Origin: Mustelus asterias
Taxonomy: Eukaryota
Direction of reading: 5' to 3'
Length of the DNA stretch: 64,000 nucleotides
Assembly: GCF_964213995.1 (NCBI RefSeq)
Contig: NC_135825.1
Coordinates: 12,896,001 to 12,960,000 of the forward strand
The notes under the pieces were generated by a model. The model saw only the letters and a program-made list of their open reading frames with translations. It made no database searches and was not told where the DNA came from. Positions 20,787-62,739 of this stretch are shown here, piece after piece; the stretch's first letter is position 1, and the number at the start of each line of letters is the position of its first letter. The translations under genes were made by a program, and so were the position numbers.

Positions 20787-20792
20787 AATAAA
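20787..20792 (+). terminator. Probable polyadenylation signal of copy 1 (copy 2 at 61582-61587)
   Basis: AATAAA about 210 nt after the stop, with T/GT-rich sequence downstream. Confidence 0.55.
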
Positions 20793-30920: not shown

Positions 30921-31049
30921 ATTGCAGATATAAAGAAACAACAACTGACCTCCAAGCAAGCTGAACGGGCGCGCGGAAACTTTGCGCGTGGGCGATATAG
31001 CCTTCGGACCATTGTATAACGGTCACGCGGGATATTAGTAAGTGATAAG

Positions 31050-39130: not shown

Positions 39131-39194
39131 TGCAGATCCTTTGACCGATTTAGAGACACTTGTGCTGAAAACTGTGGATACTGTTGCCGGGACC

Positions 39195-39234
39195 ATGAGG
39201 TTCACCGCGTTGCTGCTCCTCACTTTGATATCAA
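39195..39234 (+). CDS. Receptor gene copy 2, exon 1 (signal peptide MRFTALLLLTLIS), phase-1 donor
   Basis: GACCATGA Kozak-like start, hydrophobic leader, A|GTAAGA donor in phase 1 matching the phase-1 acceptor of the IgV exon at 44204. The link crosses N gaps. Confidence 0.8.
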
Positions 39235-40284
39235 GTAAGATTTTCCTGTTCTATATTTGGAATGACAATTCACGTTTATGTTGAATCTTCATCTGAGGAA
39301 AATGGTTCAAAGTTGTTCACAGAGGAGTGAAGAAACACAGACTCTGGGCCAAAGGAGGGCAGGTGGAAAGGGTGAACCAAAAGCTCAGTCGAAGAGATGG
39401 GTGTTGAAGAGGGGGAGAGGGAATTGGCGAGGAGGAGAGGTTTGACAACAGAGTCTCAAAATGTTGGATCTAATTGAAAACACGACCATTAATGGTGGGG
39501 CACTTGGTTTCAGAGGAATGGAGAGTCCCCTCAGGGAGGGGGATAGTGGAATATCGGAGGACATTACAGGAATGTGAACAGATTCGTATAATTTGCAAAT
39601 TAACCTAGAAACCCACATGGCGCTCACTCCTGCCACCTAGAGATAGCGACAGGAATAGAATCCATCATGCCTGTCATATCTGAAGTAAAAAAAAGAGAGG
39701 AAGATGGGGAATAGGACAGCCTGGATAGTTCTTCCTGAGAGTTCTGCAGTTTCAATGATGGGCAGTAGAGTTTCTTTCTGTGCTGTGAAATACGGTGACA
39801 GAGTGGTTAGCACTGCTGCCTCACAGTGCCAGGGACTTGGGTTTGATTCACAGCTTGGGTCACTGCCTGTGCGGAGTCTGCACGTTCTCCCCGTGTCTGT
39901 GGGCTTCCTCCGGGTGCTCTGGTTTCCTCCCGCAGTTTGAAAGATGTGCTGCTTAGATGCCATTGGCCATGCTAAATTCTCCCTCAGGCACCTGAGTGTG
40001 GCGACTAGGGGATTTTCACAGTAACTTCATTGCAATGTCAATATCAGCCGACTTGTGACACGAATAAATAAACTTTACTACTTTGCCCACATGGAAATCA
40101 AATATCTCGGGATACGGATTAAACCCATTACTTCCCAACATGTTGAGCAAATATCATGTTGAAGAAATTCTTGCCTGCGCCCTCAACTATCCTCCCTGCC
40201 ATCCTATCTGTTGAATAAGTTAACACACCGTCATTTCTGACCAATTAACATCGCTTCATAATATATATTATCTTTGCAATTTAG

Positions 40285-40465
40285 ATATTGCGTTTCTGCT
40301 TCAAATACGATTAAAGAAACGCAGACAAAACTTCTGGGGTCTAAAGGAGCCACTATATTCATCGAGAATGTGGCTTCACATGACCCAGGTTTTTATCTTT
40401 GTAAAATATTTATCAGGCTGGGAAGATGAACGAGATCACAGCCCTGGTGCTGAGGTTCTATAATT
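40285..40465 (+). pseudogene. Decayed, internally deleted IgV pseudo-exon in intron 1 of copy 2
   Basis: After tttgcaatttag: SASNTIKETQTKLLGSKGATIFIE, then NVASHDPGFYLCK (DxGxYxC), then a frameshift to IYQAGKMNEITALVLRFY (G-strand-like). Confidence 0.6.
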
Positions 40466-40769
40466 GAGGCCATTACCTGATTCACTCCTGCTTGTGATAA
40501 CACAAAGGAAGAAAGGACATTACTCGAAAAGCAGGATATATTGTTCCTTCTGGAAGAGTACAGGCTTGAAATCGACTGGCTTGGCCTCACCCCAGTGCTA
40601 GGCTGAGGGGCTGACCTGCAGAATGTGCTTCTCTCTCTCGGTGAGTTGGTGTCGCATTCCTGTACCCCACATCCTACTGCGAAGGCAGCTGTCCCAGAAC
40701 ACATCCAGTCACCAAATGCATCACAAAGATGGCCGCTGTCACGATTGGCTCAATCCTGAAGGAGCAGGC

Positions 40770-41319
40770 CCAAAGTTTGTATGTACTTGGAATATAGTGT
40801 TCAATTCTGGTCGCCACACTACCAGAAGGATGTGGAGGCTTTGGAGAAGGTGCAGAAAAGATTTACCAGGATGTTGCCTGGAATGGAGGGCATTAGCTCT
40901 GAGGAGAGGTTGGAGAAACTTGCTTTGTTCTCACTGGAGCGACGGAGGTTGAGGGGAGACCTGATAGAAGTCTACAAGATTATGAGAGGCATGGACAGAG
41001 TGGATAGTCAGAAGCTTTTTCCCAGGGTGGAAGAGTCAATTACTAGGGGGCACAGGTTTAAGGTGCGAGGGGCAAGGGTTAAAGGAGATGTACGAGGCAG
41101 ATTTATTACACAGAGAGTAGTGGGTGCCTGCAACTCGTTGCCGGGGGAGGTAGTGGAAGCGGATACGATAGTGAGTTTTAAGGGGTGTCTTGACAAGTAC
41201 ATGAATAGGATGGGAATAGAGGGATCTGATCCCCGGAAGGGTGGGAGTTTTAGTTAAGTCGGGCAGCATGGTCGGTGCAGGCTTGGAGGGCCGAAGGGCC
41301 TGTTCCTGTGCTGTAATTT
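40770..41319 (+). mobile_element. CR1 LINE 3' fragment
   Basis: LEYSVQFWSPHYQKDVEALEKVQKRFTRM..LERRRLRGDLIEVYKIM. Confidence 0.92.
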
Positions 41320-42742
41320 NNNNNNNNNNNNNNNNNNNNNNNNNNNNNNNNNNNNNNNNNNNNNNNNNNNNNNNNNNNNNNNNNNNNNNNNNNNNNNNNN
41401 NNNNNNNNNNNNNNNNNNNNNNNNNNNNNNNNNNNNNNNNNNNNNNNNNNNNNNNNNNNNNNNNNNNNNNNNNNNNNNNNNNNNNNNNNNNNNNNNNNNN
41501 NNNNNNNNNNNNNNNNNNNNNNNNNNNNNNNNNNNNNNNNNNNNNNNNNNNNNNNNNNNNNNNNNNNNNNNNNNNNNNNNNNNNNNNNNNNNNNNNNNNN
41601 NNNNNNNNNNNNNNNNNNNNNNNNNNNNNNNNNNNNNNNNNNNNNNNNNNNNNNNNNNNNNNNNNNNNNNNNNNNNNNNNNNNNNNNNNNNNNNNNNNNN
41701 NNNNNNNNNNNNNNNNNNNNNNNNNNNNNNNNNNNNNNNNNNNNNNNNNNNNNNNNNNNNNNNNNNNNNNNNNNNNNNNNNNNNNNNNNNNNNNNNNNNN
41801 NNNNNNNNNNNNNNNNNNNNNNNNNNNNNNNNNNNNNNNNNGACACATACACACGCACATACACATACACAAACATGCACATACACACACACAAAAACAC
41901 GCACACGCACACACACTTACACACACATGCATGCGCGCACACACACACAAGCCCATACATGCACACACTCACACAAACATATGCACACGCACACACATGC
42001 ACACACTCACAGACACATGCACACACACGCGCACATATACATAAACACGTACACACACATACACGCCCGTACGCACGCAAACTCACATACACACGCACAT
42101 AAATGCACTTACATACACACACACGCACATGCACGCACGCACACACACACACACACATGAACATACATGCACACACACTCACATACACATGCGCANNNNN
42201 NNNNNNNNNNNNNNNNNNNNNNNNNNNNNNNNNNNNNNNNNNNNNNNNNNNNNNNNNNNNNNNNNNNNNNNNNNNNNNNNNNNNNNNNNNNNNNNNNNNN
42301 NNNNNNNNNNNNNNNNNNNNNNNNNNNNNNNNNNNNNNNNNNNNNNNNNNNNNNNNNNNNNNNNNNNNNNNNNNNNNNNNNNNNNNNNNNNNNNNNNNNN
42401 NNNNNNNNNNNNNNNNNNNNNNNNNNNNNNNNNNNNNNNNNNNNNNNNNNNNNNNNNNNNNNNNNNNNNNNNNNNNNNNNNNNNNNNNNNNNNNNNNNNN
42501 NNNNNNNNNNNNNNNNNNNNNNNNNNNNNNNNNNNNNNNNNNNNNNNNNNNNNNNNNNNNNNNNNNNNNNNNNNNNNNNNNNNNNNNNNNNNNNAGCACT
42601 CATACNNNNNNNNNNNNNNNNNNNNNNNNNNNNNNNNNNNNNNNNNNNNNNNNNNNNNNNNNNNNNNNNNNNNNNNNNNNNNNNNNNNNNNNNNNNNNNN
42701 NNNNNNNNNNNNNNNNNNNNNNNNNNNNNNNNNNNNNNNNNN
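41320..42742. other. Assembly gaps (N runs 41320-41841, 42196-42594, 42606-42742) within CA-rich sequence
   Basis: Ns in the sequence. Confidence 1.
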
Positions 42743-43246
42743 AGACACACACACTCTCACTCCCAAGGACACACACCCACACAATCCCTCACACAGACAT
42801 AGACGCACACTCACTCATTCCCTCACACACAGACTCTCACTTACTCTCTCACTCTCTCACACGCACACACACACACACACACACTCTCTCTCACTCTCCC
42901 TCCCACAAAAACACTCTCCTTCTCTCACTCCCACACACACTCACTCACACATTTGGGGCTCTGCTCAACAGAGTCTCACCCCTGGGCCTTGTGGCCAGCT
43001 CTCCTCCCCAGGACCTCCTCATGCTTGTCCCCAGGCCCAGTTTGGAGGTGCTGGAGTTGGGTTCCGTGCACTCTGACAACAACACCCCACTGGTGGAAGG
43101 GCACGATGAGAGGTAGTTGTGGAAATCTTGGGATTTTAAAAATGAATATTAATTCTAAAAATGAGGAGTTACATTAACCCTTTACTGCTCACTTGTTACA
43201 TCTCTGCTGGAGTATTGGGTACTTCAAGTATGGGGATATAAAAAGG

Positions 43247-43555
43247 GGTGGCACGGTGGCACAGTGGTTAGCACTGCTGCCTCACAGTGCCAGGGACCTG
43301 GGTTCAATTCCCGGCTTGGGTGACTGTCTGTGTGGAGTCTGCACGTTCTCCCCGTGTCTGCGTGGGTTTCCTCAGAGTGCTCCGGTTTCCTCCCACAGTC
43401 TGAAAGGCTTGCTGGTTAGATGCATTGGCCAGGCTAAATTCTCCCTCGGTGTACCTGAACAGGTGCCGGTGTGTGGCGACGAGGGGATTTTCACAGTAAC
43501 TTCATTGCAGTGTTAATGTAAATCTACTTGTGACTAATAAATAAACTTTACTTTA
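43247..43555 (+). mobile_element. V-SINE variant with a different tail (..TGTGACTAATAAATAAACTTTA); also at 2487-2790, 20868-21168, 33673-33970, 35375-35777 and 39790-40080
   Basis: Same tRNA head and V-domain, distinct 3' module. Confidence 0.85.
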
Positions 43556-44203
43556 CAATTCTGGGCACCACACTCGAGGAAGGGGGCAAGGGCACAGAGT
43601 GGATTTACCAGGATGATGCCAGGGATGAGGGAGTTTAGTTATGTGAACAGATTGGAGAAACCGGGATAATAGTCCTTGGAACAGAGCAGATTAAAGGGAA
43701 ATCTAATCAATGTATTGAAAATGAGGAAGGGTTTTAATACAGCAAGTGGAGAGAGCAATTATTTCCTCTCGCTGGTGGATTGGTCACCAGAGAACATAGA
43801 TTTCAAATAGTTGGAATACAAACCAGTGGATAAATGAGGGGAAATTGTTTCATGCAGAAGATTGTTATGATGCGGAATACACCACCTGGAATGGTGATGG
43901 AATGAGATTCCAAAGGAACTTTCAGAAGGCAGTTGGACATGTGTTTGGAGGGGATTAATGTGCAGGGTTGTGGGGGAAGCTGGGCCGTGGGATTCAATTG
44001 GACAATAAATTTCCAAAGAGCTGGCACAGCCATGACAGGCCGAATGTCCTCCATCTCTGCTTTAAGATTCTTGATTCCAGTCCCACCCAGGACTTGTGTG
44101 GGTCCCCTTGAGAAGCACTGGCTAGCATTGGACCAAAAGGATTGTCTACAATTGGTTGTTGGGATATTTCCAGCTTTCTTAAAATGTTATGTTTCACCAA
44201 CAG

Positions 44204-44530
44204 TTTTACGGACACAAACTGCCTCGATAGTGATGAAAGCTGCAGTGGGAGAAACCATCACTGTGGAATGTCCACAGGCAACACAGTACAAACACTTTGA
44301 AATCTGGTGGTGTAAGAAAACTTCAGAAACTCGTTGCAATCAGATATCGAGCATTGACGGAGACAGAGTCTGGAATGTTGATGCAAGAACATCGATCGCT
44401 AATACCCACGGTAACATTTCTGTAACCATACAACGACTTGAGGAGACAGACACAGGAACATACTGGTGTGGACCTCTATATCAAAACACTCTCCATGCTT
44501 TAGATGTTGTCATACTGAAGGTTTTCTCAG
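44204..44530 (+). CDS. Copy 2 IgV domain D1 exon, CD300/pIgR-like
   Basis: caacag| acceptor, G|GTAAGA donor, 327 nt phase 1-1; GETITVEC...WWCKKTSETRC (Cx7C extra disulfide)...DTGTYWC. Confidence 0.92.
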
Positions 44531-45067
44531 GTAAGAATATTTCAGAAGATTGATTATAGCTCTGATAATGTGATCTGGCTGCAATAACACAGGACAGCTG
44601 CTGTGTGCTGTGTGAACTCAGATTAATAAAATATTATCACAACTCCTCATGTACAAGTGGTGACCTCCCATATTCCCATTTCTATCATTTTCCATTAACC
44701 TATTTCCACATCCCTTCCATTTATACTCTTACAAACCAAAAATCATATTCCGCCCAAGCCTCTTTTATTGATACTTTTATGAAAAGTGAGTGTCGAGAAC
44801 TGCACTTATAGTCCATCCCTAATTATCCTTGAACTGCCTTCTTGAATCACTGCAGCTCACGAGGTGTACGTACACCCACAGTGCTGTTAGGGAGGAAGTT
44901 CCAGGATTGAGCCAGTGACAGTGAAGGAACGGCGATATATTTCCCAGTCTCGATGGTGTGTGTTTTGGAGGGGAGCTTGTAAGTGGTGGTGTTCCCATGC
45001 ACCTGCTTCCCTCCTCCTTCTAGGTGTTAGATGTTGCAGGTTTGGAAGGAGATTTAAATCATTGCTT

Positions 45068-47350
45068 TGTAATAGATCGAGGGCGACTCGATCTGGATTG
45101 AATCAATTAAGGCTTTATTGCCAACAATAAGAGTATACCTATATATACATATACATGTGCAACAAGGTCAGACTGAATTACAATGCAAATCTACTACTCA
45201 GATCCCTGGCTCCAACTGCAAAACGTTCCTTCATCCGTGGTTCGCACCCCCTTACCGATTGGCTCAGCTTCCCACCTTGACAATCCACAGCGCCTGACCC
45301 AATCACATGGCCCTCTAAACACTCCCCCACCCCAATTAATGGGCCACAATCATTCCCACTAAAATCCGAAATACAACTATGGAGGAATAAAGAACAGGCT
45401 CAGTGTTAAAGCGAAAAGAGTCACAGAAATGGAAAACTCATCAAAGGTTTAATCAGTCCGGAGGATTCCGGTCTCTGGCAGAGCGCCTCAGTTCAGTGGT
45501 TTGCTCTCCTAAGTTTAAAGGGCCAGACGGGACAGACGAGAAAGTCAGACTCATCAATCCAGGGTCTGGTGGCTCTTCAGCAGCTTCTGGTTCCTCAGTC
45601 TCCACAACCAGCGGTTGCTGCGCTCCCACATTCTCCACCAAAATCCCAGTAACCAACCCCGGCAAAGTTCAACCAACTGCAGGGGGTACCTGTTGATCCT
45701 CTGCGTCCATCACTCGCTCCTCCTCCGATGTTCTACCTGTTTCCTGAGCTGACAGCCTTGTATCTCCACAACGTCGGAGACCAGTCCTGTTCTCTCCACA
45801 ATTTTACCAGCCACCCAGGACGGGCCTGGTGTAAAATATCTGACCAAGACTGCACCCCCCGCTTGAAACACTCTGTTTCCTTTTCTTGAATCACAGTTTT
45901 CCTTCTGAAAGACTAACCTAGCCTGCACACTCCCTGGCGAATTTGGAAACATCATGTCCAGTTGTGTTCTTAACTGGCATCCCATCAGCAACTCTGCTGG
46001 AGTAACCCCTGTGGTCACGTTTGGGGTGGGGTTATAAGACAACAAAAAACTGTCCATACATAAAGGAAGAGGACAGTTTACTTGTTTTATTATTGATGAT
46101 TTGAATGTTTGTACCGCACTCTCCACTGGTCCATTTGCGGCTTCGTGGGAAGGTGCTGACCTCACATGGTGAATGCCATTGGACTTGAGGAATTTTTGGA
46201 ATTCTTCCACAGTGAATGATGTGCCATTGTCCGACACAACCACTTCCCGGAATGCCATGGATAGCAGAGAATTTCCTCAATCGATCAATGGTGTCCGTGG
46301 CTGTTGGGGACTTCATCAACTGCATATCCAACTACAACTAATATAAGAAACATATGACCCAGAAATGGCCGGCAAAATCTATATGTAACTTCGACCAAGG
46401 TTGACCAGGCCATTCCCAATGGTGGTGAAGCCCATTGAGCTTCGTAACTATGGCATTGACGAACCATCCGTTCTGTTTCCCTGCCAATGCCTGGTGAAAA
46501 CACATATGCCTGGGGCCTTCATTCTACTTTGACCTCGATGAGAGTGGTGCAGTTCTTGTAACAGGAGTTAAAGTTAAAGTCACAAGTAGGCTCACATTCA
46601 CACTGCAATGAATTTTCTGTGAAAATCTCCAAGTCACCACAATCCGGCGCCCGTTCGGGTACACTGAGGGATAATTTAGCGTGGCCAATTCATCTAACCA
46701 GCATGTCTTTGGAGTGTGGGAGGAAACCAGAGCACCGAGAGGAAACCCAACAGACACGGAGAGAACATGCAGACACAACTCAGACAGTGATCCAAGCTGG
46801 GAATCAAACCTTGGTCCCTGGCGCTGTGACGCAGCCGTGCTAACCACTGTGCCACCATACCTTCGTGGAGTCATCTACCCAGGGGTGGCACGAGAAACTC
46901 TCGCCACCCGCAGCAACACCCCATCTTCACAGGTTATCTCCATCCTTCTACTTTGGTAGGGTTTGAGCTACTCTGACTTATATCGCCACCCTCGCATTAC
47001 CATCTTCTTTACTTCTGACCATACCGGCTCTCTTTTCTCCACAGTTTTATCTGTTTCGCCGAGACTGGCAAGGTCTCTACCAGATGCAGAGCCAGTATAA
47101 TCTCTTGAGGAACCGGTGGTGGTGCGACTGTTTGTGGCAAAGGCAACCGCTAATTGCATCTGCTCATGGTATCTGCGTTCCAGGGTGATGCTGAAACGTA
47201 TAACTGTACGCTGCAAACAAAGGAGCCCATCTCTGCATCCTTGCAGAGGCAATTAGTGGCACCGGCTTCTCTAAATATACCTAACAATGGCTTGTGGTCT
47301 GAAACTATTGTAAAATGTCGCCCATAAATGACCAGCAAGTTTTCCTCATC
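45068..47350 (-). mobile_element. Gypsy-type remnant, duplication unit 2
   Basis: ORF 45710..46258 and neighbours, paralogous to 4211-6495. Confidence 0.85.
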
Positions 47351-50300
47351 TCTCTGGAAGGATGACACACACACTCTATCTCTCTCTTATTCTTTCTCCC
47401 AATTACACACACACTCTAACTTTCTCTCACTCACTCTCACTCTCACTCTCTCTATACACACACACACACACACTCCTTCTCACTCTCTCCCCACCCCCCA
47501 CACACTCATGCACACACTCTCTCTCTCTCTCTCTCACACGCTTACAGAACAAAGAGATCTAGGGGTACATGTTCATAGCTCCTTGAAAGTGGAGTCACAG
47601 GTGGACAGAGTGGTGAAGAAGGCATTCGGCATGCTTGGTTTCATCAGTCAGAACATTGAATACAGGAGTTGGGACGTCTTGTTAAAGTTGTACAAGACAT
47701 TGGTAAGGCCACACTTGGAATGCTGTGTGCAATTCTGGTCACCCTATTATAGAAAGGGTATTATTAAACTAGAAAGAGTGCAGAAAACTGCACAATAAGT
47801 GCAGTTCTCGACACTCACTTTTCATAAAAGTATCAATAAAAGAGGCTTGGGCGGAATATGATTTTTGGTTTGTAAGAGTATAAATGGAAGGGATTTGGAA
47901 ATAGGTTAATGGAAAATGATAGAAATGGGAATATGGGAGGTCACTACTTGTACATGAGGAGTTGTGATAATACTTTATTAATCTGAGTTCACACAGCACA
48001 CAGCAGCTGTCCTGTGTCATTTTCTGGGATGCTACCGGGACTTAATGAATTGAGTTATAAGGAGAGGCTGAATAGACTGGGACTTTTTTCTCTGGAGCGT
48101 AGGAGGCTGAGGGGTGATCTTATAGAGGTCTATAAAATAATGAGGGGCATAGACAAGGTAGATAGTCAATATCTTTTCCCAAAGGTAGGGGAGTCTAAAA
48201 CTAGAGGGCATAGGTTTAAGGTGAGAGGGGAGAGATACAAAAGTGTCCAGAGGGGCACTTTTTTCACACAGAGGGTGGTGAGTGTCTGGAACAAGCTGCC
48301 AGAGGTAGTAGTAGAGGCGGGTACAATTTTATCTTTTAAAAAGCATTTAGATAGTTACATGGGTACGATGGGTATAGAGGGATATGGGCCAAATGCGGGC
48401 AATTGGTATTAGTTTAGGGGATTTTTTAAAAAAGGGCGGCATGGACAAGTTGGGCTGAAGGGCCTGTTTCCATGCTGTAAACCTCTATGACTCTCCCTCT
48501 CACACACAAACACACACACAGTCATCAGCCTCTTCCACCCTCCATCCCAGCCTAGGGCTTTGCCCAACAGAGTCTCACTCCTGGGCCTTGTGGCCAACTC
48601 TCCTCCCCAGGCCTCCTCAAACTTGTCCGCAGGCCCAGTCTGGAGATGCTGGAGTTGGGTTCCGGTGCATTCTGACAGCAACACCCCACTGGTGGAAGGG
48701 CAGGTTGAAAGGCAGTTGTGGGATTCTTGAGGACGGCACAGTGGCACAGTGGTTAGCCTCACAGCACCAGGGACCTGGGTTTGATTCCTGGCTTGGGTCA
48801 CTGTCTATGTGGAGTCTGCACATTCACCCCGTGTCTGTTTGGGTTTTCTCCGGGTGTTCCGTTTTCCTCCCACAGACCGAAAGATGTGCTGGTTAGGTGC
48901 ATTGGCTTTCTAGTTTAATAATATCCTTTCAATAATAGGGTGACCAGAATTGCACACAGTATTCCAAATGTGGCCTTACCAATGTTTTGGTAAGACTCCC
49001 CCATTCCCCAACCAACCTCCACCTGAAACAAATCTATCAGCAAAATCCAGCTTGTTGTTACCACTCGATACCAGGAGGGTGATCCAGTCTGGAAAGTGCC
49101 TGCCTGGTTCAGCGAAGACAGATAAACTGCCTGTCTGAAGGTTTCTGCATTAAGTTAACTGTAAGACTTTAGAAGTGGCCTCTCTTATTAGCAAGCTTGC
49201 TGTGAGATGTTACCCTGGCCTTCTTGTGACATGTTAAAACCGACCTTCCTGTGACATGTTAAAAATGGCCTTCCTGTCACATGTTAAAACCGACCTTCCT
49301 GTGACGTGTTAAAACTGGCCTCTCTGCTTCTGCGGGAGTTGGCAATTATACCCTGGCTATCTTTGATTCTGCTCACTGTTTTCTGAACTGTCTGCCTCTC
49401 CCACATTCCTTGACCCTCGAAAATTAGGATCTGTATGCCACCCCTGATGCTACAGATATCTCGCGAAACCACTTCCTGATAACAGGGCCATTTACGTCTG
49501 AACTTATCTAGATGGTTGCTAGGGAACACATCTCATCAGCCCATTTGAATGTGGGTTCCTGCTGTTGCCAGGCAGATTCTTCCTATTTTGCGAAGGGCAC
49601 TGCCCCCGACCACCCAGGAGGCTTCAATGGTCTCCACTCCCACTGCCGAGGCAATCACATCTGGTACCCGTTGCTGGGGAACCGTACGTGATCCTCGCAA
49701 GTAAGGACCTCGACTAGTGGCAAGGTAAGGGCAAGTGAACCCAGACAATAGCGTGTGGTACTCACTAATTACTCACGCACTCTCAAAGATTCCTCTCACG
49801 CCGCCCTCCCCCCTCCTCAACCCCCCATCCAGACACCACTCCCCCACTCCTGGATTGCGCCAGTCTTCTTTCCTCATAAGGGCAATGGGCCCAGTGCAGG
49901 AAGGTGGGATTACAAAGTGAACCTGGGTGTCCTCGGGCTGGCATGGACAAGATGGGCCAAATGACCTACTTCTGAGCTGTAATTTTTCAATGGTTCTGTC
50001 CTACCCCCGTTTCCCACTTCCTCCTCCCTCTGCCCCTCTCTCCTCCACCCCACTCTTCTGCTCTCCTCTCGCCATCCCCCACTCTACGCCCAGGGCCACC
50101 GAGACTCACTCCTCCAATCCTGAATACAGCATAATAGTAATGCATACATTAATAAAATGAACTAAGAACTAATGGGGATCTGATGGTGGTTTTGAACATC
50201 TGGACTGATAGCTTTTTTGGACTAAATAAAAATAAATAAATTCAGGTTTTATTTAATTCATTTCCTTGTGTTTTGATGCAGGTTTTCTGAGCGAATTCGA

Positions 50301-51571
50301 TGCCTTTGATCACAATTGATGTCAAATGACAGTTGATCATTTTTAGCTCAAAAATAATGTCAACATTTTCTTGTAGCTTTTGATCTCAATGGGTGAGATT
50401 TCAACATTCTAGAATTTACCAGTGACCAGAATCTGAACTGGACTAGCCATGTAAACACTGTGGCTACTGGAGTAGGTCAAAGGCTAGGAATCCTGAGGCG
50501 AGTAACCCACCACCTGACTTTTCAAGGCTGACCATAGAACCACAGAAATGATACAGCACAGAAGGGGGCCATTCAGCCCATCTTGTCCATGCTGAGCCAA
50601 AGACACTCAAGTGCCCTTTCTAATCCCATATTCATGCACACGGCCCATAGCCTGTAGCTTACAGGACTTAAGGTGCAGATCTGCCTCCACCACCAACTCA
50701 GGCACTGAATTCCATACCCACCATTGAGTGGGTATGGAAGTCAGGAAAGAGATGGAATACTCTCCATTTGTTTGGATGTGTGTAGCACCAACACTTAAGA
50801 AGCTCAACACTGTCCAGGACAAAACAGCCCACTTGATTGCTATCCCTTCCACAAAAAAACTCAATCCCTCCCCCATCAATGAACAGTGACAGTGTACCAT
50901 CTACAAGATGCACTGCATGAACTTACCAAGACTCCTTAGGCAGCACCTTCCAAACCCACGACCACCACCATCTAGAAGGACAAGAGCAACAAAAACCTGG
51001 GAACACCTTTCACCTGGAGGCTCCCCTCCAAGCCACTCAGCATCCTAATTTGGAAATGTATTGCTGTTCCTTTACTATCGCTGTGTCAAAGTCCTGGAAT
51101 TCTCACCCTAACAGCACAGTGGGTATACTTTGCAATGAAGATTCAAACTCTATTTGACCTACAAGTAACAAACTCATGTTGCTTGTAAGTCTTTCATGTT
51201 CATCCAAAACTAGACCCAGTTCCTGTAGAACAGGCCTGGAGTTGGATACCATCCATCAACTTTGAAAATTCACCCAGACATGCTGAGCAATTTCATTGCA
51301 GCTGCAGAAAATAGAAATGGTTTTTATTAACCTTAGACCCAGACACCTCTGAAATTTTAAATGAAGTGTTTAGAATGAGCAAGAATTGAATACAGGAGCG
51401 TTTAACAATTACACTGCATTTTATGACTATAATCCTTTTCGTACTTTAAAAACAGAAAATATTGTTGACATTTTCAATGTTTGGTTAATTTATCATGTTT
51501 TGGGCAATGAAAAATGTTCAGTTTTTCACCATTTTGAACTTTTAATGGCTCTTTTTCTCATTTATCAACAG

Positions 51572-51898
51572 GTAGATGGGAACCAATCCTATCAGAGGTC
51601 AGTGGTGTTGTGGGAAATGCCGCCATTATACCGTGTCTGTTCACGGAGAAGGAGAGACTCTATCAGAAATTCTTGTGTAAAGCAACCTCTGTAAATAAAT
51701 GTATTATTATTGCCAGCTCTAATGGAGTTCCAGAGAATCGGAATAACGGGAACGTTTCAATCACTATTGATAATTCTTATAATTTTATCGTTACCATGAA
51801 TAACATAGACAAAGGCAATGAAGGAGAGTATTGGTGTGGAGCAGAAAAAATCAATGACATAAAGATCGTAGCGATCAGAAACTTGACAATTACTGAAG
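51572..51898 (+). CDS. Copy 2 IgV domain D2 exon
   Basis: tttatcaacag| acceptor, G|GTAAGG donor, 327 nt phase 1-1; GNAAIIPC...KFLCKATSVNKC (Cx7C)...NEGEYWC. Confidence 0.92.
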
Positions 51899-52388
51899 GT
51901 AAGGATCAATATAAAATTATTATAATTCAATCAGTATTGTATAAAACTCACAAAACAATAACAGAGGCTGGCATGGTGGTGCAGTGGTTAGCACTGCTGC
52001 CTCACAGCACCAGGGACCCGGATTCCATTCCAGCCTCGGGTCACTGTCTGTGTGGAGTTTGCACATTCTCCCAGTGTCTGTGTGGGTTTCCTCCGGGTGA
52101 TCAAGTTTCCTCCCACACTCCAAAGATGTGCGGGTTAGGTTGATTGGCCATGCTAAATTGACCCAAGCGTCAGGGGAATTACCAGGGTTAATATAGGTTA
52201 CGGGAATAGGGCCTCGGTGGGATTGTAGTCGGTACAGACTCGATGGGCCAAATGGCCTCCTTCTGTCCTGTAGGGATTCTATGATTCTTTGAACAATTGG
52301 TCAATGCTGTTGTTCATGTTTTACACAAGGCTATCACCCTATTTCATCTCAATCTTGCAGCATATCCTTCTATTCTTTTCCCCCTCAG

Positions 52389-52454
52389 TAAGTTCCTCTC
52401 GATTCACCCGAAAAGTATCTACAATATTTGGCACCACTGCACCTTATGGTACAG
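52389..52454 (+). CDS. Copy 2 predicted Ser/Thr stalk exon (VSSSRFTRKVSTIFGTTAPYGT)
   Basis: Polypyrimidine tract plus CAG, G|GTAAAC donor, 66 nt symmetric phase 1-1, open frame. Confidence 0.55.
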
Positions 52455-53336
52455 GTAAACACAGAAACATAGGAAATGGGAGCAAGAGTATTCCTTCAGC
52501 ATACCTCAGATTCACTAAACAAAAACCAGCAATGTCCATAAGCTGGACATTTTTAAGACGTTCTGTGCACCAATTTTAACCGAGTAAGTGTTTTTTTAAA
52601 CTTACCTGGACAATTCTGCCTCGGCACTGTGTTCGCCGTCATGTAGCTCTCGACTAGTTACTGGCTTCACTGCTTCATATTCCACTCTCTCCGCCACTCC
52701 AAGTGACCCTTACACCAGCCGACCCAGAGAGACATGAACCACCCGTGGCCTGAACCACCCGACCGCATTCCAGCAAGGTCTGAAATCCAGCAGGACTGGA
52801 TTTGAGCGATTGCACCCAATTCCACATTGAACAAGTTCCACCTTCTAACAACTCTCTGGGTAAGGAGATTAGAAACTTTCACTGATACTAATAGTAACCG
52901 TCAATAATAAAAATACATTGAAAGTTCATAGAATCGCTACAATGCAGATGGAGGCCATTCAGCCCACACTCACAACAATCCCACCCAGGCCCTATCCTCG
53001 TAACCCCACACATTTACCCTGCTAATTCCCCAACACCAAGGGATAATTTAGCATGACCAATCAACCTTAACCTACACATCTTTGTTGTGTAGGAGGAAAC
53101 CAGAGCACCCAGAGGAAACCCACGCAGACACGGGGAGAATGTGCAACCTCCATGCAGACGGTGCCCCAAGCCAGGAATCGAATCCGGGTCCCTAGCGCTG
53201 TGAGGCAGCAATGCTAACCACCATGCCACTGTGCTGCACCTCACAGATTATTGTCCATCCGACACTATTAGCCCCCTGTGAAGCCCCCTCAGAATCTACC
53301 TTCTCCTCAGCCTTTTCACAAGATTATATACGTTAG

Positions 53337-53497
53337 TTAATTTTATTGTTACCAAGAGGAAAGGAAATGAAGGAGTGTTCTGGTGTGGAACAGCAAAAAT
53401 AAATGGTGGAAACCTTGTAAAGATAAGAGAATCGGACAATTCCTGACGGTAAGATTCTATGTAAGATTATTATAATTCAGTCGGTATTGAATCGAAC
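53337..53497 (+). pseudogene. Decayed D2-like pseudo-exon (copy 2)
   Basis: Paralogous to 12611-12770. Confidence 0.8.
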
Positions 53498-56400
53498 TCG
53501 GAACGGAAACTTGGCCAATACCAGTGCTTGTGCTTCACATGAGGCCCATTCTAGTCACCCCTTATCTCACTCTTTTAGCATCCCCTTTGGTTCATTTCCG
53601 TCTAAATGCCTTTATCTCGCTCCCCATTAAAAGCATCTATGACTTTTGCCACAACTTCTGCTTACGGTAGCAAGTTTCACATTTCGCAGGTTCCACATTC
53701 TAACAATTCTGAGTAAAGAACTTTCTTCCTGAATTCCTCATCGGTTATTTTAGTAACCATTTTAGATTTTGGTTCTGTCATAATCATAGAATCACAGAAT
53801 CCCTGCAGTGCTGAAGGAGGCCATTTGGCCCATCGAGTCTGCACCGAACACAGTCCCACCAAGGCCCTATTCCCGTAACCCCTCTTTTTTATCCTGTTAA
53901 CTCCCCTGACACTAATTTAGCATGGCCAATCAACCGAACCCGCACATATTTGGACTGTGGAAGGAAACCGGAGCGCCCGGAGGAAACCCATGCAGACACG
54001 GGGAGAATGTGCAAACACTACACAAACAGTGACTCGAGGCCGGGATCGAACCTGGGTACTTGGCGCTGTGAGGCAGCAGTGCTAACCACTGTGCCATGCA
54101 ACCCCAGTGCATAAGTGGAAACATCTCTTATGTCTTATGATTTTTTTCCCCACCATGCATGGGATGTTGGTGCCTCTGAGGAGGCCAGCTCTAACTAAAT
54201 TTGATTTGATTTGATATATCATTGTCACATGTATTACTATACAATGAAAAGCATTGCTTCCTGCATGCTATACAGACAAGGCATACCGTTCAGAGATAAG
54301 GAAAGGAGAGAGTGCAGAATGTAATGTTACATTCATAGCTAAGGTGTAGAGAAAGATCAGCTGAGTGCAAGGTGGGCCCATTGTAGAGTCTGTTTGCAGC
54401 AGGGGAGCAGCAGCTGTTCTTGAGTCGGTTGGTACATGTCCTCCGACTTTTGTATCTTTTTCCGACAGAAGAAGGTGGAAGAGAGTATGTCCTGGGTGCG
54501 TGGGGTTCTTGAAAGCTGGCTGCTTTTCTGAGGCAGCAGGAGGTGTAGACAGACTCAACGGATGGGAGGCTGGTTTGCGTGATGGACTGGGCTTCATTCA
54601 TGACCCTTTGTCATTTTTTGCGGTCTTGGGTAGAGCAGGAGCCACACCAAGCTGTGATACAACCAGAAAGAATGTTTTCTGTGGTGCATCTGTAAAAGTT
54701 GGCGAGAGTCGTAGTGGACATGCCAAATTTCCTTAGTCTTCTGAGAAAGTAGAGCCTTTGGGGGGCTTTCTGAACTATAGTGTTGTCATGGGAAGACCAG
54801 GACAGGTTGTTGGTGATCTGGATACCTAAAAGCTTGAAGCTCTTGACCATTTCTACTTCGTCCCCATTGATGTAGACAGGGGCATGTCCTTTACTACGCT
54901 TCCTGAAGTCAATGACTCTCTCCTTCATTTTGTTGACATTGAGGAAGAGATTGTTGTTGTCACACCAGTTCACCAGATTCTCTATCTCTTTCCTGTACTC
55001 CGTCTCATCATTATGTGAGATTCGACCCATTGGTGGTGATGTCATCAGCAAACGTGAAAATTGAGTTGGAGTGGAATTTGTCCACACAGTCATAGGTGTA
55101 TAAGGAGTATAAAAGGGTGTTAAGAACACAGCCTTGTTGGGCACCGGTGTTGAGGATGATCGTGGAGGAGGTGTTGTTGCCTATCCTTACTGATTGCGAT
55201 CTGTGGGTTCGGAAGTCCAGGATCCAGTCCAAATGTGAACATTTGGTGGCAGGTCACTGCTGCAATCCATGTAGTGTTGGTGCTGTTTGGGAGAGAATCC
55301 CAGGATCCGAATCCAGTGAGAGTGAGATAACAACGATGCATTTCTAAACCTGGGTAGAATATTACACATACTTATTTGATCAGGCAGCACGGTGGCACAG
55401 TGGTCAGCACTGCTGCTTCACAGCGCCAGGGACCCAGGTTCAATTCCGGCCTTGGGTCAGTGCCAGTGTGGAGTTTGCACATTCTCCCCATGTCTATGTG
55501 GGTTTCCCCCGGGGGGTTCGGTTTCCTCCCACAGTCCAAAGGTGTACAGCAAAGGTTGATTGGCCATGCTAAATTGCCCCTTAGTGTCAGAGGAATTAGC
55601 ATGGTAAATACATGGGGTTATGGGGATAGGGCCTGGGTGGGATTGTGGTTGGTGCAGACTCAATGGGCCGAATGGCCTCTTGCTTCACTGTTGGGAATCT
55701 ATGACTCTAATCCATCTATGAGCTTTAGTGAAATCATTGCTTGCGGTAGCACGTAGAATTCAGTAAATGTAGATAAATTGGCATCTTAATCTGGACATAA
55801 AAACATTTGCAAGTCATCACTTCGATTTCGAATGAGCAACAAGTGAGGCCACGATTATTTCTCTTTGTTTCAGCCTCACTTTATGATGAAAGAAGATAAC
55901 CTCATTCTGTGTTATGGGGTAGAAACATATATTGAAGAAGCTCTGTGGCAAATCCACCCTCATTTTGAGTTTGACCACATTGGACAGTGAGGCATCAAGT
56001 AATCTTTCCCTGCACAAGGGAAGAAAAGATTAAGGGTGCAGTCACGGCTCGGCGCTTTGGATGGATTCTTACCAGTGCCATTAGCGTTGCCAACTTTGAT
56101 TAGGGTGGCACGATGGCACAATAGATAGCACTGCTACCTCACAGCACCAGGGACCCAGGTTCAATTCCAGCTTTGGGTGTCTGTCTGTGTGGAGCCTGCA
56201 CGTTCTCCCCATACCTGCGTGGGTTTCTTCCGGGTGCTCCGGTTTCCGCCCACAGTCCAAAGATGTGCTGGTTAGGTGAGTTAACCATGCTAAATTGATC
56301 CTCAGTGTCCAGGAATTTGTAGGTTTAGTGAATTGGCCATGGTAAATTTACAGGGTTACGGGAATAGGACAGTGGGGGGGTGAGGGGGGGTGTTAGGGGC

Positions 56401-58724
56401 ATAAGGCTAGTAAGATGCTCTTTCAGAGAGTCAGTGCAGGCTCAATGAGCCAAATGGCCTCCTTCTGCACTGTAGGAAGTTTATAGAAATATACTTCTCC
56501 AACCATGCTCCAACCATCAGTCACCCAACACATGCATCTCGTGACATACCACCTTCCTACGCGAATTGGAAAACATAAAGGCTCATTTTTTGAGTGGATG
56601 ATGCATGATTGTCAGTGAAATAGCATTTCCACTGCCCCCCTCCGTCACCCCCACCATTTTCAATATTTTTATAACCAATAAAGAGAAGTGTTCGAAGGAA
56701 ATGACCAAAAGAAATCTTTTTTAATGTCCGGATGATTTTTCTCCAGTGTCCTGGAGATTCCAGATCAATCCAGGAGGGTTGGTGACCCTAACTCCCTGGA
56801 GGTGATGTTACAGGTGGAGGCAAGGGGAATTTCAGACAGTTGAGTGTTGGGACAGTTCTCCACTGTTGTCCCACCTCTGGGCCAGTATCCCATGGGCAGA
56901 CTACCATGGGAACTGTCAGCCTACTCCCTGGAGACAGGCAGTCAACAAAGCCAATTAAGGGTCTACTTAGCAGCCATTTTCAGCAGTCACTGGAATTTTC
57001 CTGGTATCAAGCCCCAACCTCCACTGTTCCCCCCCCCCCCCCCCAACCATCCATCCCTTCCCATCCCCCGCACCCCACTCCTCCTACTGGGGCCAGAGCC
57101 AGCTCTTTGAAGACAACCTCCCAGCAGGTGGAAGGCCATTGGACCCTCTTCTCAATCCCCCTATTCATGGAGCCACACAAACTAAAGAGCCACAACCACA
57201 ATAACTCCTGCCAGGGAGATCCCCCTTCAATCTAATAGCCCAAATGGATGTGGGCCTTCTTCAATTGCAAATTCTCGACAGGCCTCTGAGGTCACCTCCA
57301 TTTTGATAAAACCCTCTCAGTCCTCTAGCTGCCTGTTTGACCATAAACTAAATCTATCTCTTCCTCTGCTCCCCTTGCACAAGATTATGCGACAATTCAA
57401 GACAAGGAAATCCGTTCAACCAACGTCCATCCGTCCATCCATCCATCCATCCATGTCTATTCATCCATCCAGCCAAATCTATTCATCCAAGTCTATTCAT
57501 CCATCCATATATATCCATCCATATCTATCCATCCATCCAGAATTTGACCAGTTGGCTCAAGGAAACTGAAAGTGCGGCACGGTAGTACAGTGGTTAGCAC
57601 TGCTGCTTCACAGCTCCAGGGACCCGGGTTCGATTCCCGGCTTGGGTCACTGTCTGTGTGGAATTTGCACATTCTCCCCGTGTCTGCGTGGGTTTCCTCC
57701 GGGTGTTCCGGTTTCCTCCCACAGTCCAAAGATGTGCGGGTTAGGTTGATTGGCCGTGTTAAAATTGCCCCTTAGTGTCCTGAGATGCGGAGGTTAGAGG
57801 GATTAGCGGGTAAATGTGTGGGGATACGGGGGTAGGGCCTGGGTGGGATTGTGGTCGGTGCAGACTCGATGGGTCAAATGGCCTCTTTCTGCACTGTAGG
57901 GTTTCTATGAATCTATGAAAGAGCCAGTGATCAGAACAACTCTCTGGGTAAAGAGTTTAGAAACTTTCACTGATACTAATAACAACCACTAATAATAAAA
58001 CGACATTGAAAGTTTATGCTATACTTCACAGAATATTGTCTTTCCAACACTATTAGCCCCTTGTGAAACCCCCTCAGAAAACCAGCCTCCCACCCATTGA
58101 CTCTGTCTACACTTCCCGCTGCTTCGGAAAAGCAGCCAGAGTTATCAAGGACCCCACGCACTCCGGGCATTCTCTCTTCCACCTTCTTCCATCGGGAAAA
58201 AGATACAAAAGTCTGAGGTCACATACCAGCCGAATCAAGAACAGCTTCTTCCCTGCTGCCATCAGACTTTTGAATGGACCTACTTCGTATTAAGATGATC
58301 TTTCTCTACACCCGAGCAATGGTTGTAACACTACATTCTACACTCTGTCCTTCCTGTCACCATGTTAGGGATGCTTAGTCGGTCCAGCGCGCAAGAACCA
58401 ATACTTTTCACTGCATGCTAATACATGTGACAATAATAAATCAAATCAAAACCTTCTCCTCAGCTCACTTTTCAATATGTCAGTTAAGGACACAGAATCC
58501 ATTCAAAAAATCGCTGTTCATTCATCCTGTATTTGACCAATTGATGTAAGGAAACTTAACCAGCCAGTGTTCAGAATGAATTAAACCCCTGCCCCCCACC
58601 ACCAACCTGCCATTCCCCCACTCACAACACCCAGGCTCACTTTCTATAAGTACTGTCTACTGAAGGGAATTGTGGTGGTTATCAGTTCTTCATTGAATTA
58701 TTCATTCATGTTCATTTGCTACAG

Positions 58725-58758
58725 TAGGAAATTCAGAAGTTTCCAACAATACCTCAAG
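58725..58758 (+). CDS. Copy 2 short juxtamembrane exon (VGNSEVSNNTSR)
   Basis: ttgctacag| acceptor, AG|GTAAGA donor, phase 1 to phase 2, matches the TM exon phase. Confidence 0.75.
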
Positions 58759-60068
58759 GTAAGATTTGAATTTGCATCTTATAAATAACAATTGTTGAGC
58801 CATTCTGAATGAAGCCACAGTTGATAGATAATCCTGCTTCCCTCACAAGTCATGGTGAGCAATGCAATGTCTTTATATTACCACAGTCCAGATAGCGGCA
58901 ATCTTGGTGCCATATTTTTCCTCAGGATTCTTCCATTGATTGTCTTCCCATTTAAGACACACAACATCGAAGTCAGGGAGCAAAGTTCTTGCATGTCCTG
59001 CCAATAATCATTCAGTACAATAATATGTGAGGATCGCATTGCAACTTTCTGCTGATTCCTTCCACCATGGAACACCCGTCACCTCAGCCCGGTGTTTCAT
59101 TCATTCCCGGGATGTGGGCGCTGCTGACAGAGCCTGCATTTATTCCCAATCCCTCATTGCCCTTGAGAAAGAGTTGGTAAGTTGCCAACTTTCAACCCCT
59201 GCTGTCCATGTGATGTCGGTGCACCCACAGTGTTATTCAGTGGAGAGGGTTTTGACCCAGAAAAGGTGAGGAAACCGTGATACACTTCCAATTCAAGTTA
59301 GCGTGGGAGTTAAAAGGGGAATTACAGGTGGCGCTGTCATGCCTGCTGCCCTTGTCTCTGTAAATGGCGATGGTCACAGGTTTGGAAGGTCATGTTGAAG
59401 AAGCCTCAGAAAATTGCTGCAAAGTATCGTCAACAACGAGATGTAATCTCACCAGAACATTGCTCAGCTCTCAGCTCAGGAGTAAGTAAATGAATTCCTC
59501 AAGTTGGTTCAATCTGTTGGAGATATTTTCCCTGTGCACACACAGCCCAATAACTCCGCAATGTGATTACACGTTGTAAATCAGCCCACAGCTTGTACAA
59601 ACTGTCTGTGCTTTCAATATGATGTTGCACACATTTTGGGAAGTTGAATGTGGTCATAGAATCCCTACAACGCAGAAGTGTCCATTCGGCCCATCAAATC
59701 AGCACTGACTCTCTGCCAGGCCCTCTGCTCTGCCCTATCCCCATAAACCCACTCATCTACCATAGCCAATCCGTCTAACCTACACACCTTTGGACACTAA
59801 GGGGCAAATATAGTATGGCCAATCCACATAACCTGCATATCTTTGGACTGTGGGAAGAAACCGGAGCATCCGGAGGAAGCCCACACAGACACAGGGAGAA
59901 CGGGCAAACTCCACACAGACAGTGATCCAAGCCGGGAATTGAACCCGGGTCCTTGGAGCTGTGAGGCAGCAGTGCGAACCACTGTGCCACCGTGTTTATC
60001 ACACAAGTTTATCACATAAACTTTGGGATAAGTTATCTTGTATTAATTATAGCTCCTTCTTTTGTCAG

Positions 60069-60175
60069 AGACGTTCTGTTGGAGATATGGGCGATATTCC
60101 GCTGGCTGCTCTTCAGTGCTCTGGTTGCTTGCACTGTTTCAGTCACGTGCTATGCAGATTGTGCAAAAGACCCAG
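60069..60175 (+). CDS. Copy 2 transmembrane exon with intramembrane Arg (DVLLEIWAIFRWLLFSALVACTVSVTCYADCAKDP)
   Basis: ttttgtcag| acceptor in phase 2, hydrophobic helix, G|GTATAA donor. Confidence 0.85.
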
Positions 60176-61348
60176 GTATAATATTTTAAATCTGTTTCCT
60201 CTCATATTTATAGATATTTAACTTCAACCTAAAAGCTTAGGCACTTTGAAAGTTGCTGAAAAAACACAGCAAAAAAATCTACAAGAAAATGACTCCTCCT
60301 CGAGAAATCTAACCGAATGAACCATTATCACCAGGCCAGTGTTAGAATAAGCACTGCTGGAGTGAATTTTATGTTTGTTAATAGAAAGGATAAAATGTCA
60401 GTTCATCTGCAGTTTTTGGTTTACACGTGGGAGTCCAAGATGGGAAAATTCCAAGTAGGCAGTGGATACAAAGCACTCAGTTTCATTCAATGTTTATTTA
60501 AAATGCACGCTTGTGGACAAAGGTGGCCATAAGACCATAAGAAACAGGAACAGGAGAAGGCTGTTCGGCCCCTCAAGCCTGCTCCACCAATCAAAAGGAT
60601 CATGGGTGATCCCAACATTCCTCATGTCCACTTTCCTGCCCTTTCCCGTAATTCCCGTAATTCCTTTACTGATCAAAAATCTATCTATTTTGGTCTTAAA
60701 TATACACAAGGACTCTGCCCCCACAGCTCTCTGTGGCAAGGAGTTCCAAAGACTCACAGCCCTCTGAGAGAAGAAATTCCTCCTCATCTCAGTCTTAAGT
60801 TGGTGCCCCTTTATTCTGAGACCGTGCCCTCTGGCCCTAGACTCTCCCATGATGGGAAGCATTCTCTCAGCATTTACCCTGTCAAGCCCCTTAAGAATCC
60901 AAGATGACTCAATGGCCTGGAACATGGATAAAAGAACACCAGCAGTGTTCCCGGATCAGAAACAGTTGGCGGACTTTTCCCGTCCGGCCCGCCGTGGGAA
61001 TCGGAGCAGGTGGGGGGCGGACCATGCAAATGGCCATTGACTTCTAGTGAGATTTTCCAGTCTTGGGGCGAGCGCGGCCGGAAAATCCCACCCAGTATAT
61101 TGCATTGTAGAACCTGGAACCCCAAGATGGGCGCCAGAGCTTTGGGCACCGCACGCAAAATAGAAAGCTCCCCCTACCTCAGGAAACTTGAACAATATCA
61201 CTGTTTGAGATTATGGCAAACACGCTTCAGCACTTATGTGAGGATATACCCAACCATTCCTTCACCTATTTTTTTGCCAGTGTCTCTCAAAGTATTTCAC
61301 TTCATCCATTTTCAACAGTCTAGTTGCTTAAATTAATTTCTCCTTCAG

Positions 61349-61368
61349 CTCCCCAGGTGAGCAAATGA
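61349..61368 (+). CDS. Copy 2 probable terminal coding exon (APQVSK*); alternative acceptor gives GEQMMGYVETSTTEHKWIRV* ending at 61418
   Basis: atttctccttcag| acceptor, phase 1, AATAAA at 61582-61587. Confidence 0.55.
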
Positions 61369-62739
61369 TGGGTTATGTGGAAACCTCAACCACAGAACAT
61401 AAATGGATCAGAGTTTGATTCGAAGATTGCTCGGAAGATTGACTAATTCCTACACGAATGTCCAGAATATTCCCACTTGCTTTGAGAAGTTACTTTGCAA
61501 TATTGCAGTATTTTATACTTTATGACAATCTGAAATGCTTTGTACCGCCTCCAGAAATTGTGTGCAAACTCCTTTTATTCTAATAAAAAATAGATAAACT
61601 TTCTTGATATTTTTATTTTAAGGAGTCAAGTTGTTTTTTGCCATGGTCACAAATGTCTAAGTTTTAAAGTTTATTTATTAGTGTCGCAAGTAGGCTTACA
61701 CTAACAATGCAATGAAGTTACTGTGGAAATCCCCTCGTCGCCACACTCCAGCGCCTGTTCGGGTACACTGAGGGAGAATTTAGCACGGCCAATGCACCGA
61801 ACTAGCACATCCTTCGGATTATGGGGGGAAACCGGAGCACCGAGGAAACCCACGCTGACTCTGGAAGAACATGCAGACTCCGCACAGACAATGACCCAAA
61901 CCGGGGATCGAATTCAGGTCCCTGGCACTGTGAGGTAGCAGCATTAACCACTGCGCCACCGTGCAAATGATAGGATTCATGCTGATAATTGTCCCCAGTT
62001 TGCATTAATCAGCACAAACTGGTTAAAAAGATGTCATAGTTTGATTTTGAAATAATACAATGAAATTGGAGGAAAATGGAAAGACAAGGGGAAGTGGCTT
62101 TGAGCGCATGTGGAGAGTTTAATCCCCTTAAAGTCACAGAAGACCTGGATCCCAATACCAAAAAATCCCCAATAACAAAATTTTATTCACATATGGACTT
62201 GGAGTTTTGGCCACCTGGAACTGGATTCACCAACCTCGCTTGCAGCTGGGATTTTCCAGACCCGCTGAGGGCCAATTTCTCCGTTCTTGCTGACATCGGC
62301 CACGGGGCATGAACGGATGGAGAATTCTTGCCCTGGGTCTTTAAAGACAAAGATAACACTGCCTCACCTGCTGCAGCTGGCATCTTTCCTGGCGTTATCT
62401 GAAGACTGAGGACGGGATTTTCCGGCCATTCTTGTCAGTGGGATTTTCCAGTCCCGCCGCAGTGAACAGAGATTTGGCTGAACACCAAATTCTCCATCCT
62501 CGCTTGCAGCGGCAGTGAGGCGTGAACGACCGGTAAGATCGTGCCCTGAATCTTTGAATAAAAGGGGGCAGCACAAAATCTGGGCTTCCTCACCACGTGG
62601 TTATTTATCGCCACCTTCCAAATATAGTCTTGTGTTTTCTTTGATGAGCTACAAGCTCTTGTTTGATAGAATCATAGAATCCCAACAGTGCAGAAAGAGA
62701 CCATTCGACCCATCGGGTCTGCACTGATCACAATCCCAC

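Follow-up and report, generated by a model that had tools for sequence, protein, structure and literature searches.

Tandem copies of a two-domain CD300/pIgR-type receptor gene with an arginine-bearing transmembrane helix in the shark Mustelus asterias

What kind of receptor is encoded by a stretch of shark DNA in which short open segments can be joined into a protein with two immunoglobulin (Ig) domains and an arginine inside its membrane helix? The stretch analysed here, 64,000 nucleotides (nt) of contig NC_135825.1 of the shark Mustelus asterias (positions 12,896,001 to 12,960,000; hereafter the window), raises this question at 39195-61587. A preliminary description, made from the letters alone, had read this interval as a seven-exon gene for a 306-residue receptor of the activating type with a second copy upstream. 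We found that the interval holds one complete gene (copy B), which encodes a type I membrane receptor of an elasmobranch family. We consider it probable that this gene and the upstream copy (copy A) are short-tailed members, with an arginine in the transmembrane (TM) segment, of an elasmobranch family of paired receptors of the CD300/pIgR type, most likely its activating partner.

Searches were performed exon by exon or with natural relatives as queries, and all six exons of copy B were found to match the corresponding parts of RefSeq models from M. asterias and Scyliorhinus canicula. AG and GT flank every internal exon, the phases (1, 1, 1, 2, 1) are compatible and the lengths add up to 855 nt, that is 284 codons plus a stop, by direct reading and by script; two S. 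canicula models, P0163 and P0164, are likewise 284 residues long. The leader is identical at 13/13 positions to that of the M. asterias model P0161 and at 12/13 to that of a second M. asterias model, P0001 (XP_078054025.1). The codon split between exons 1 and 2 (A/TT) reads as Ile, as in the 'TLIS-I-L' of both models, which gives the join of these two exons indirect support. The stalk exon, including its split codons, encodes VGNSEVSNNTSR; its peptide shows 12/13 identity to 'TEGNSEVSNNTSR' of P0001, with 'GNSEVSNNTSR' reproduced. The TM region is 89-92% identical to that of P0001 and 64% identical to that of P0163, and the last-exon peptide APQVSK equals the P0001 C-terminus (6/6). As isolated BLAST matches, the stalk and last exons were not significant (E 0.30 and 152), but both stand in the right order, strand and phase, have good splice sites and reproduce P0001 peptides; we calculate that any particular 6-mer would turn up about 0.002 times by chance in six frames of 64 kb. 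P0001 and P0163/P0164 thus share with the window gene the leader, the exon layout, the type of the membrane-distal (D1) and membrane-proximal (D2) domains, the stalk peptide, the Arg-TM motif and an APQVSK or VLQASK end. The AATAAA signal accounts for the end coordinate given earlier, 61587.

Six of the seven exons proposed in the preliminary description were therefore recovered, with AG/GT borders, compatible phases and matching relatives. The seventh, a 66-nt exon said to lengthen the stalk, was not. Its most likely position has a good acceptor tract and a GTAAAC donor, yet it is one of 16 open phase-1 candidates of the form AG-66-GT within 51900-58660, and the open reading frame (ORF) around it belongs to no Pfam family. 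In the elasmobranch relatives read, such a segment is absent and the end of D2 runs directly into a stalk of 10-18 residues. This exon was rejected, and the protein is therefore probably about 284 rather than 306 residues long.

Three further observations concern the borders of the gene. A tandem CAG-TAG acceptor at 58722-58728 allows a stalk exon of 34 nt or, with a start at 58728, of 31 nt, the two forms being one Val apart; the shorter form fits P0001, which does not have the Val of the longer one. Just 5' of the ATG, two frames of 39122-39194 can be aligned with the residues by which the Heterodontus model P0006 is extended at its N-terminus, and the Carcharodon model P0166 has a similar extension. 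This points to a 5' untranslated region that sharks have conserved; in the window it would contain an upstream ATG that is out of frame with the gene. Finally, the last coding exon (61349-61368) holds CAG/GTGAGC, a consensus-like donor at which the Scyliorhinus torazame model P0165 continues into a longer tail.

Table 1. Window coordinates of the two gene copies, the 66-nt segment and the assembly gaps.
Feature	Position	Strand	Remarks
Exon 1, copy B (start codon, leader MRFTALLLLTLIS and 1 base, phase 1)	39195-39234	+	40 nt; ATG, GT donor
Exon 2, D1, copy B (membrane-distal V-set, C22...C88 and extra C36-x7-C44)	44204-44530	+	327 nt, AG/GT
Exon 3, D2, copy B (membrane-proximal V-set with its own Cx7C pair)	51572-51898	+	327 nt, AG/GT
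Stalk exon, copy B (VGNSEVSNNTS, then AG of the Arg codon)	58725-58758	+	34 nt, AG/GT
TM exon, copy B, (R)DVLLEIWAIFRWLLFSALVACTVSVTCYADCAKDP	60069-60175	+	107 nt, AG/GT
Last coding exon, copy B, (A)PQVSK then TGA	61349-61368	+	20 nt, AG acceptor
AATAAA poly(A) signal, copy B	61582-61587	+	direct reading
66-nt 'stalk' exon proposed earlier, most likely position	52389-52454	+	unsupported
D1, copy A	3347-3673	+	AG/GT
D2, copy A	10846-11172	+	AG/GT
Stalk exon, copy A	17930-17963	+	AG/GT
TM exon, copy A	19274-19380	+	AG/GT
Last exon, copy A	20554-20573	+	AG acceptor
AATAAA, copy A	20787-20792	+	same signal as copy B
Three N runs (522, 399, 137 N) with short read islands between	41320-41841, 42196-42594, 42606-42742	.	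assembly gaps

The TM helix of copy B (IWAIFRWLLF...) carries an Arg and is followed by a cytoplasmic tail of about 15 residues (CYADCAKDP, then APQVSK), in which there is no match to [SIVLT]xYxx[IVL]. This tail end is supported by P0001, P0163 and P0164, and the relatives' ends are identical (APQVSK) or similar (VLQASK), in agreement with the Arg-bearing TM segment and short tail, without an immunoreceptor tyrosine-based inhibitory (ITIM) or activation (ITAM) motif, that had been described. In three lineages a charged residue (E, K or E) stands just before the hydrophobic run; counted from it, the Arg would stand at about position 6 of 23, within the half of the helix nearer the outside.

The TM exon is preceded by two AG acceptors 16 nt apart (60051-60069), the upstream of which starts the exon at 60053. 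When joined to the phase-2 stalk exon, an exon with this start is read out of frame and without a TM segment, and no stop interrupts the shifted frame within the TM exon. Translation of the TM exon in the shifted frame is also what the S. torazame models P0005 and P0169 show, and the shifted frame of the window aligns with P0005; in the S. canicula model P0167 the TM exon is skipped and the stalk exon is joined straight to the last exon. Because the 60053 acceptor yields the shifted reading seen in the S. torazame models, TM-less isoforms from the window gene are plausible. The main product could then be a soluble, secreted decoy or opsonin, made by TM-exon skipping or through the upstream AG, as these models and the open shifted frame of the window might suggest. 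We consider this rather improbable: the pyrimidine tract is better at the 60069 acceptor than at the upstream one, sharks and rays alike have conserved the Arg-TM reading, and the tail encoded in the shifted frame has neither the same length nor the same frame in S. torazame as in the window.

Both Ig domains proved to be of the V-set type of pIgR, CD300 and TREM, each with a Cx7C pair, as had been claimed. The Pfam V-set family (PF07686; curated cut-off 26 bits) was matched by D1 with 50.2 bits and by D2 with 39.7 bits. The segments CKKTSETRC (D1) and CKATSVNKC (D2) align with the Cys pair of pIgR domains, between the C and C' strands, where a disulfide is predicted in addition to the B-F pair. 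Across 20 family sequences, each of C22, C36, C44 and C88 is either invariant or conserved to at least 90%. An AlphaFold2 (AF2) model of D1 reached a predicted local distance difference test score (pLDDT) of 90.4; a Foldseek search with this model gave TLT-1, TREM2 (two chains) and mouse pIgR D1 as the top four, followed by antibody V domains.

Sequence searches of the PDB placed pIgR chains at the top for both domains (E 1e-22 to 5e-26), with scores that sum 3-5 matched domains. Among the matches listed, the best single human pIgR domain scored 25.1-26.0 bits with D1 and 25.5 bits with D2. Single-domain entries gave (D1/D2) 44.8/40.4 bits for CD300A (2q87), 43.8/44.0 for CMRF35-like molecule 6 (9z0m), 29.5/28.0 for mouse pIgR D1 alone (4nob) and 32.1/22.8 for NKp44; TREM2 scored 25.6 with D1 and was not listed for D2. 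A teleost two-domain pIgR chain (5f1s) reached 46.5/56.3 bits. Since the pIgR scores sum several domains while single CD300 domains score higher, the nearest solved relatives, domain by domain, are CD300A/C and not any single human pIgR domain, as judged from these bit scores. The RefSeq name 'pIgR-like' may be partly a product of the same multi-domain summation.

These scores bear on the idea that the gene is the shark counterpart of pIgR itself, carrying polymeric IgM across epithelia. The window gene does resemble pIgR (five domains in tetrapods, two in teleosts) in its tandem V domains with an aligned Cx7C. There is no clear pairing of D1 with D1 or of D2 with D5 of pIgR, as human D5 and D1 are about equally good matches for either domain of the window gene. 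pIgR proper has a long cytoplasmic tail with sorting and transcytosis signals and an uncharged TM segment. The window protein, in contrast, has a tail of about 15 residues, without room for sorting signals, and an Arg in its TM helix. Although the summed pIgR chains give the highest PDB matches, the family bears the name 'pIgR-like' in RefSeq and a J chain is present in sharks according to passages of PMC4016189 and PMC9321927, the top scores come from 3-5 domains per chain, and a single human pIgR domain reaches at most 26 bits against 40-45 for CD300A/C. That copy B is pIgR itself is in our view extremely improbable.

The second copy, which had been placed about 40.8 kb upstream, was borne out by self-alignment of the window at offsets of 40,729-40,855, with identities of 95.8-98.1%. 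Three blocks were obtained: 3058-6505 against 43913-47363 (3.5 kb, 95.8%), 6636-15652 against 47365-56392 (9.0 kb, 98.1%) and 15654-23209 against 56453-64000 (7.6 kb, 97.9%). All five downstream exons are intact in copy A, and its leader would fall upstream of the window start. Between the copies, D1 differs at 14 nt and the TM exon at 1 (His/Asp); D2 (0/327), the stalk and the last exon do not differ. Divergence of the flanks is a mosaic, lowest near the TM exon (0.3%) and highest immediately before D1 (3.8%), and may reflect gene conversion or a composite history. An assembly that had set two haplotypes in tandem might leave such a second copy, all the more as gaps lie inside the unit and the duplication is read from assembled sequence alone. 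Divergence of 2-4% over 20 kb, its unevenness in the flanks sampled, the 11 amino-acid differences in D1 and the presence of further paralogues in M. asterias all speak against this artefact, which we regard as very unlikely.

The differences between the copies are concentrated in D1, where 11 codons are changed and 1 is silent. Counted by the Nei-Gojobori method, there are 12 nonsynonymous (Nd) and 2 synonymous (Sd) differences, with a ratio of their proportions (pN/pS) of 1.75; diversifying selection on D1 is thus suggestive only (Fisher p 0.74). The D1 pN of 4.8% compares with 2.2-3.8% in the flanking introns. The D2 flanks diverge by 0.47% and 1.87%, and the identity of D2 over its 327 nt is likewise only weakly informative. 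That D1 diversifies while D2 is frozen is a fair description of the two copies, not a demonstrated signal of selection. Mapped on the AF2 model, the differences at positions 28, 31 and 97 belong to loops BC and FG, and that at position 42 is enclosed by the cysteines of the Cx7C pair.

A stop-closed remnant of a D2-type exon, corresponding to its 3' third (F-G strands), was seen on the plus strand of both copies (53339-53428 in copy B, 12613-12702 in copy A), about 1.4 kb downstream of D2. It shows 57.6% identity to D2 over 33 residues by tblastn in copy B and is followed by intron-like sequence resembling that after D2.

The best relatives are all from elasmobranchs, M. asterias first, as expected of the cartilaginous-fish gene that had been proposed. 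A HMMER scan with D2 returned 687 proteins at E ≤1e-3, and the closest of them are all RefSeq or UniRef models from elasmobranchs that bear the name 'polymeric immunoglobulin receptor-like' or 'CMRF35-like molecule'. The genera represented are Mustelus, Scyliorhinus, Carcharodon, Cetorhinus, Heterodontus, Hemiscyllium, Pristiophorus, Heptranchias, Pristis, Narcine, Leucoraja, Amblyraja, Hypanus and Hemitrygon. The near-identity of leader and D2 to P0161, together with the P0001 stalk and tail peptides, by itself points to M. asterias or a very close relative.

When tail classes were counted over 32 elasmobranch models, both an Arg-bearing and an ITIM-bearing form were found, and each recurs across species. 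The Arg-TM motif (I/V)W-x-x-x-R-W-x-L-L is present in 8/32 models from 5 species (M. asterias, S. canicula, S. torazame and the rays Hypanus sabinus and Hemitrygon akajei). Their tails, taken to begin where the best hydrophobic window of 21 residues ends, comprise 19 residues in 4/8 and 37-66 residues in 4/8. Motifs resembling an ITIM or an immunoreceptor tyrosine-based switch motif (ITSM) occur in 13 of the 32 models, from 10 species; 7 have an uncharged TM segment without a canonical ITIM, several of these being truncated, and 4 have no TM segment. The preliminary description had pointed to a possible ITIM-bearing partner. Such a form exists in M. asterias: P0161 has an uncharged TM segment and the ITIMs ITYSTV, TIYANL and VEYSTL, and its D2 is identical to that of the window gene at 107/108 residues, whereas the D2 of P0001 is 88% identical; one of its two D1-type domains (D1b) is 85.7% identical to the window D1. 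No such partner was detected inside the window, where tblastn with the TM segment and tail of P0161 (residues 345-482) gave nothing below E 1.9.

These data are consistent with the following model for copies A and B. The protein, with its leader, two V-set domains, 11-residue N-glycosylated stalk, Arg about six residues into the TM helix and tail of about 15 residues without a tyrosine motif, would be expressed at the cell surface and would recognise its ligand through the variable, membrane-distal D1. A dimeric, Asp-bearing ITAM module of the zeta/gamma type would associate with the receptor through the TM Arg, and the opposing signal would be given by the ITIM-bearing sibling, with its almost identical D2. 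Through such an adaptor the window receptor would be activating.

Among known systems, mammalian CD300 (CMRF35/LMIR/CLM) shares with the window gene a V domain with an extra Cys pair and gives the highest PDB scores of any single-domain chains. The CD300 family comprises ITIM members and short-tailed members with a charged TM segment. Its proteins have one Ig domain, and crystallised CD300 ectodomain chains comprise 110-124 residues, whereas the window protein has two Ig domains. The charge also differs, since activating CD300 members mostly have Lys or Glu in the TM segment and the window protein has Arg. As stated in part of a 2026 review (PMC13107469), all known DAP12 partners have a central TM Lys, and an Arg in the top half of the TM segment is taken as the mark of zeta/gamma assembly. 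An activating, FcR-gamma-coupled receptor would fit this positional rule. Further systems for comparison are the zebrafish PIGRL family and the skate MDIRs. The MDIRs of skate and zebrafish, as portrayed in sections of PMC9321927 and PMC3031540, are multigene families of activating and inhibitory receptors with CD300/TREM/pIgR-like domains. A search with the skate family member P0044, covering proteins of 0.55-1.75 times the query length, returned 8 proteins, none of them named MDIR.

Several points weigh against an activating receptor encoded by two working genes. The elasmobranch relatives that support the gene model are computed RefSeq predictions. A search with P0001 gave 64 relatives but not the window's own product; either the source annotation misses the window genes or the species has not been annotated. 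Of five sequencing runs listed, none is recorded as RNA. TM-less isoforms of the same gene type occur among the Scyliorhinus models, and in 2/8 Arg-TM models, both of them isoforms from Hypanus, the tail is longer and contains a single ITIM-like match, SIYCLL. The pN/pS ratio of D1 fits relaxed constraint as well as diversifying selection. With regard to the adaptor, FcR-gamma is given as not found in cartilaginous fish in passages of Akula et al. (2014, PMC4016189).

Some of these points would also suit a different history, in which both copies derive from annotated neighbours as duplicates that are recent, silent or in decay, unexpressed pseudogenes in the making. The missing product among named relatives and the RNA count would be expected of such copies, as would relic Ig fragments within introns and a D1 whose rate of change equals or exceeds that of the flanking introns. 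Against this, the six exons seen in copy B and the five in copy A all have open frames and canonical AG/GT borders, and the copies do not differ in D2, the stalk or the last exon. We consider decay unlikely and favour working, Arg-TM members of the paired-receptor family.

The three assembly gaps all lie inside intron 1 of copy B (39234 to 44204), with exon edges 2,085 nt upstream and 1,461 nt downstream, and therefore no reading frame crosses them. ORF translations in and around the read islands are low-complexity strings, rich in His/Thr and in Cys/Val. Downstream of the gaps, 42956-44203 is roughly collinear with 2308-3346 of copy A; upstream of them, the copies have only repeats in common. 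P0001 and P0161 carry two D1-type domains, whereas the window gene shows one in the readable sequence, and an extra D1-type exon may lie in the unread part of intron 1, as after the leader in these two models. A fossil IgV domain at 40274-40429 was considered, on account of an F-strand-like ...DPGFYLC, but its matches to V-set and I-set were below threshold (E 0.04-0.09).

The introns and the 18-kb spacer between the copies are rich in repeats. Broken retroelement ORFs occupy 25090-31804 of the spacer: a gag-like one with a CCHC knuckle recognised by eye, a pol fragment with an RNase H domain and one ORF without a family. Pfam identified this RNase H domain of a reverse transcriptase at 26468-27613 (E 9.6e-11) and, below threshold, an integrase fragment on the minus strand at 45710-46258; no other cellular gene was seen.

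The window gene itself is an ordinary family member, and the window adds two genes to a family that is already auto-annotated as 'pIgR-like' in elasmobranchs and is barely discussed in the literature searched. We found no paper describing a CD300/pIgR-like family in sharks in the literature covered, which mostly leaves out subscription journals. Its short tail makes the window gene a poor candidate for an Ig transporter, so that any bearing on the origins of pIgR is speculative.

A bolder idea, to which we give little credence, is that the elasmobranch family is the missing Ig-binding receptor system: polymeric IgM that contains J chain would be the ligand of the variable D1, the oldest activating and inhibitory IgM Fc receptors would be found in the Arg-TM and ITIM forms, and the TM-less isoforms would serve as a partner resembling secretory component. 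Cartilaginous fish are said, in portions of PMC4016189 (2014) and PMC13337447 (2026), to be without pIgR and the Fc-receptor set. If the idea were true, the repeated statement that sharks have no pIgR-type receptors would be overturned. How cartilaginous fish manage antibody-dependent functions is asked in parts of the same two reviews. A family with Arg-TM and ITIM forms in sharks and rays offers concrete candidates for the binding of IgM, lipids or pathogens.

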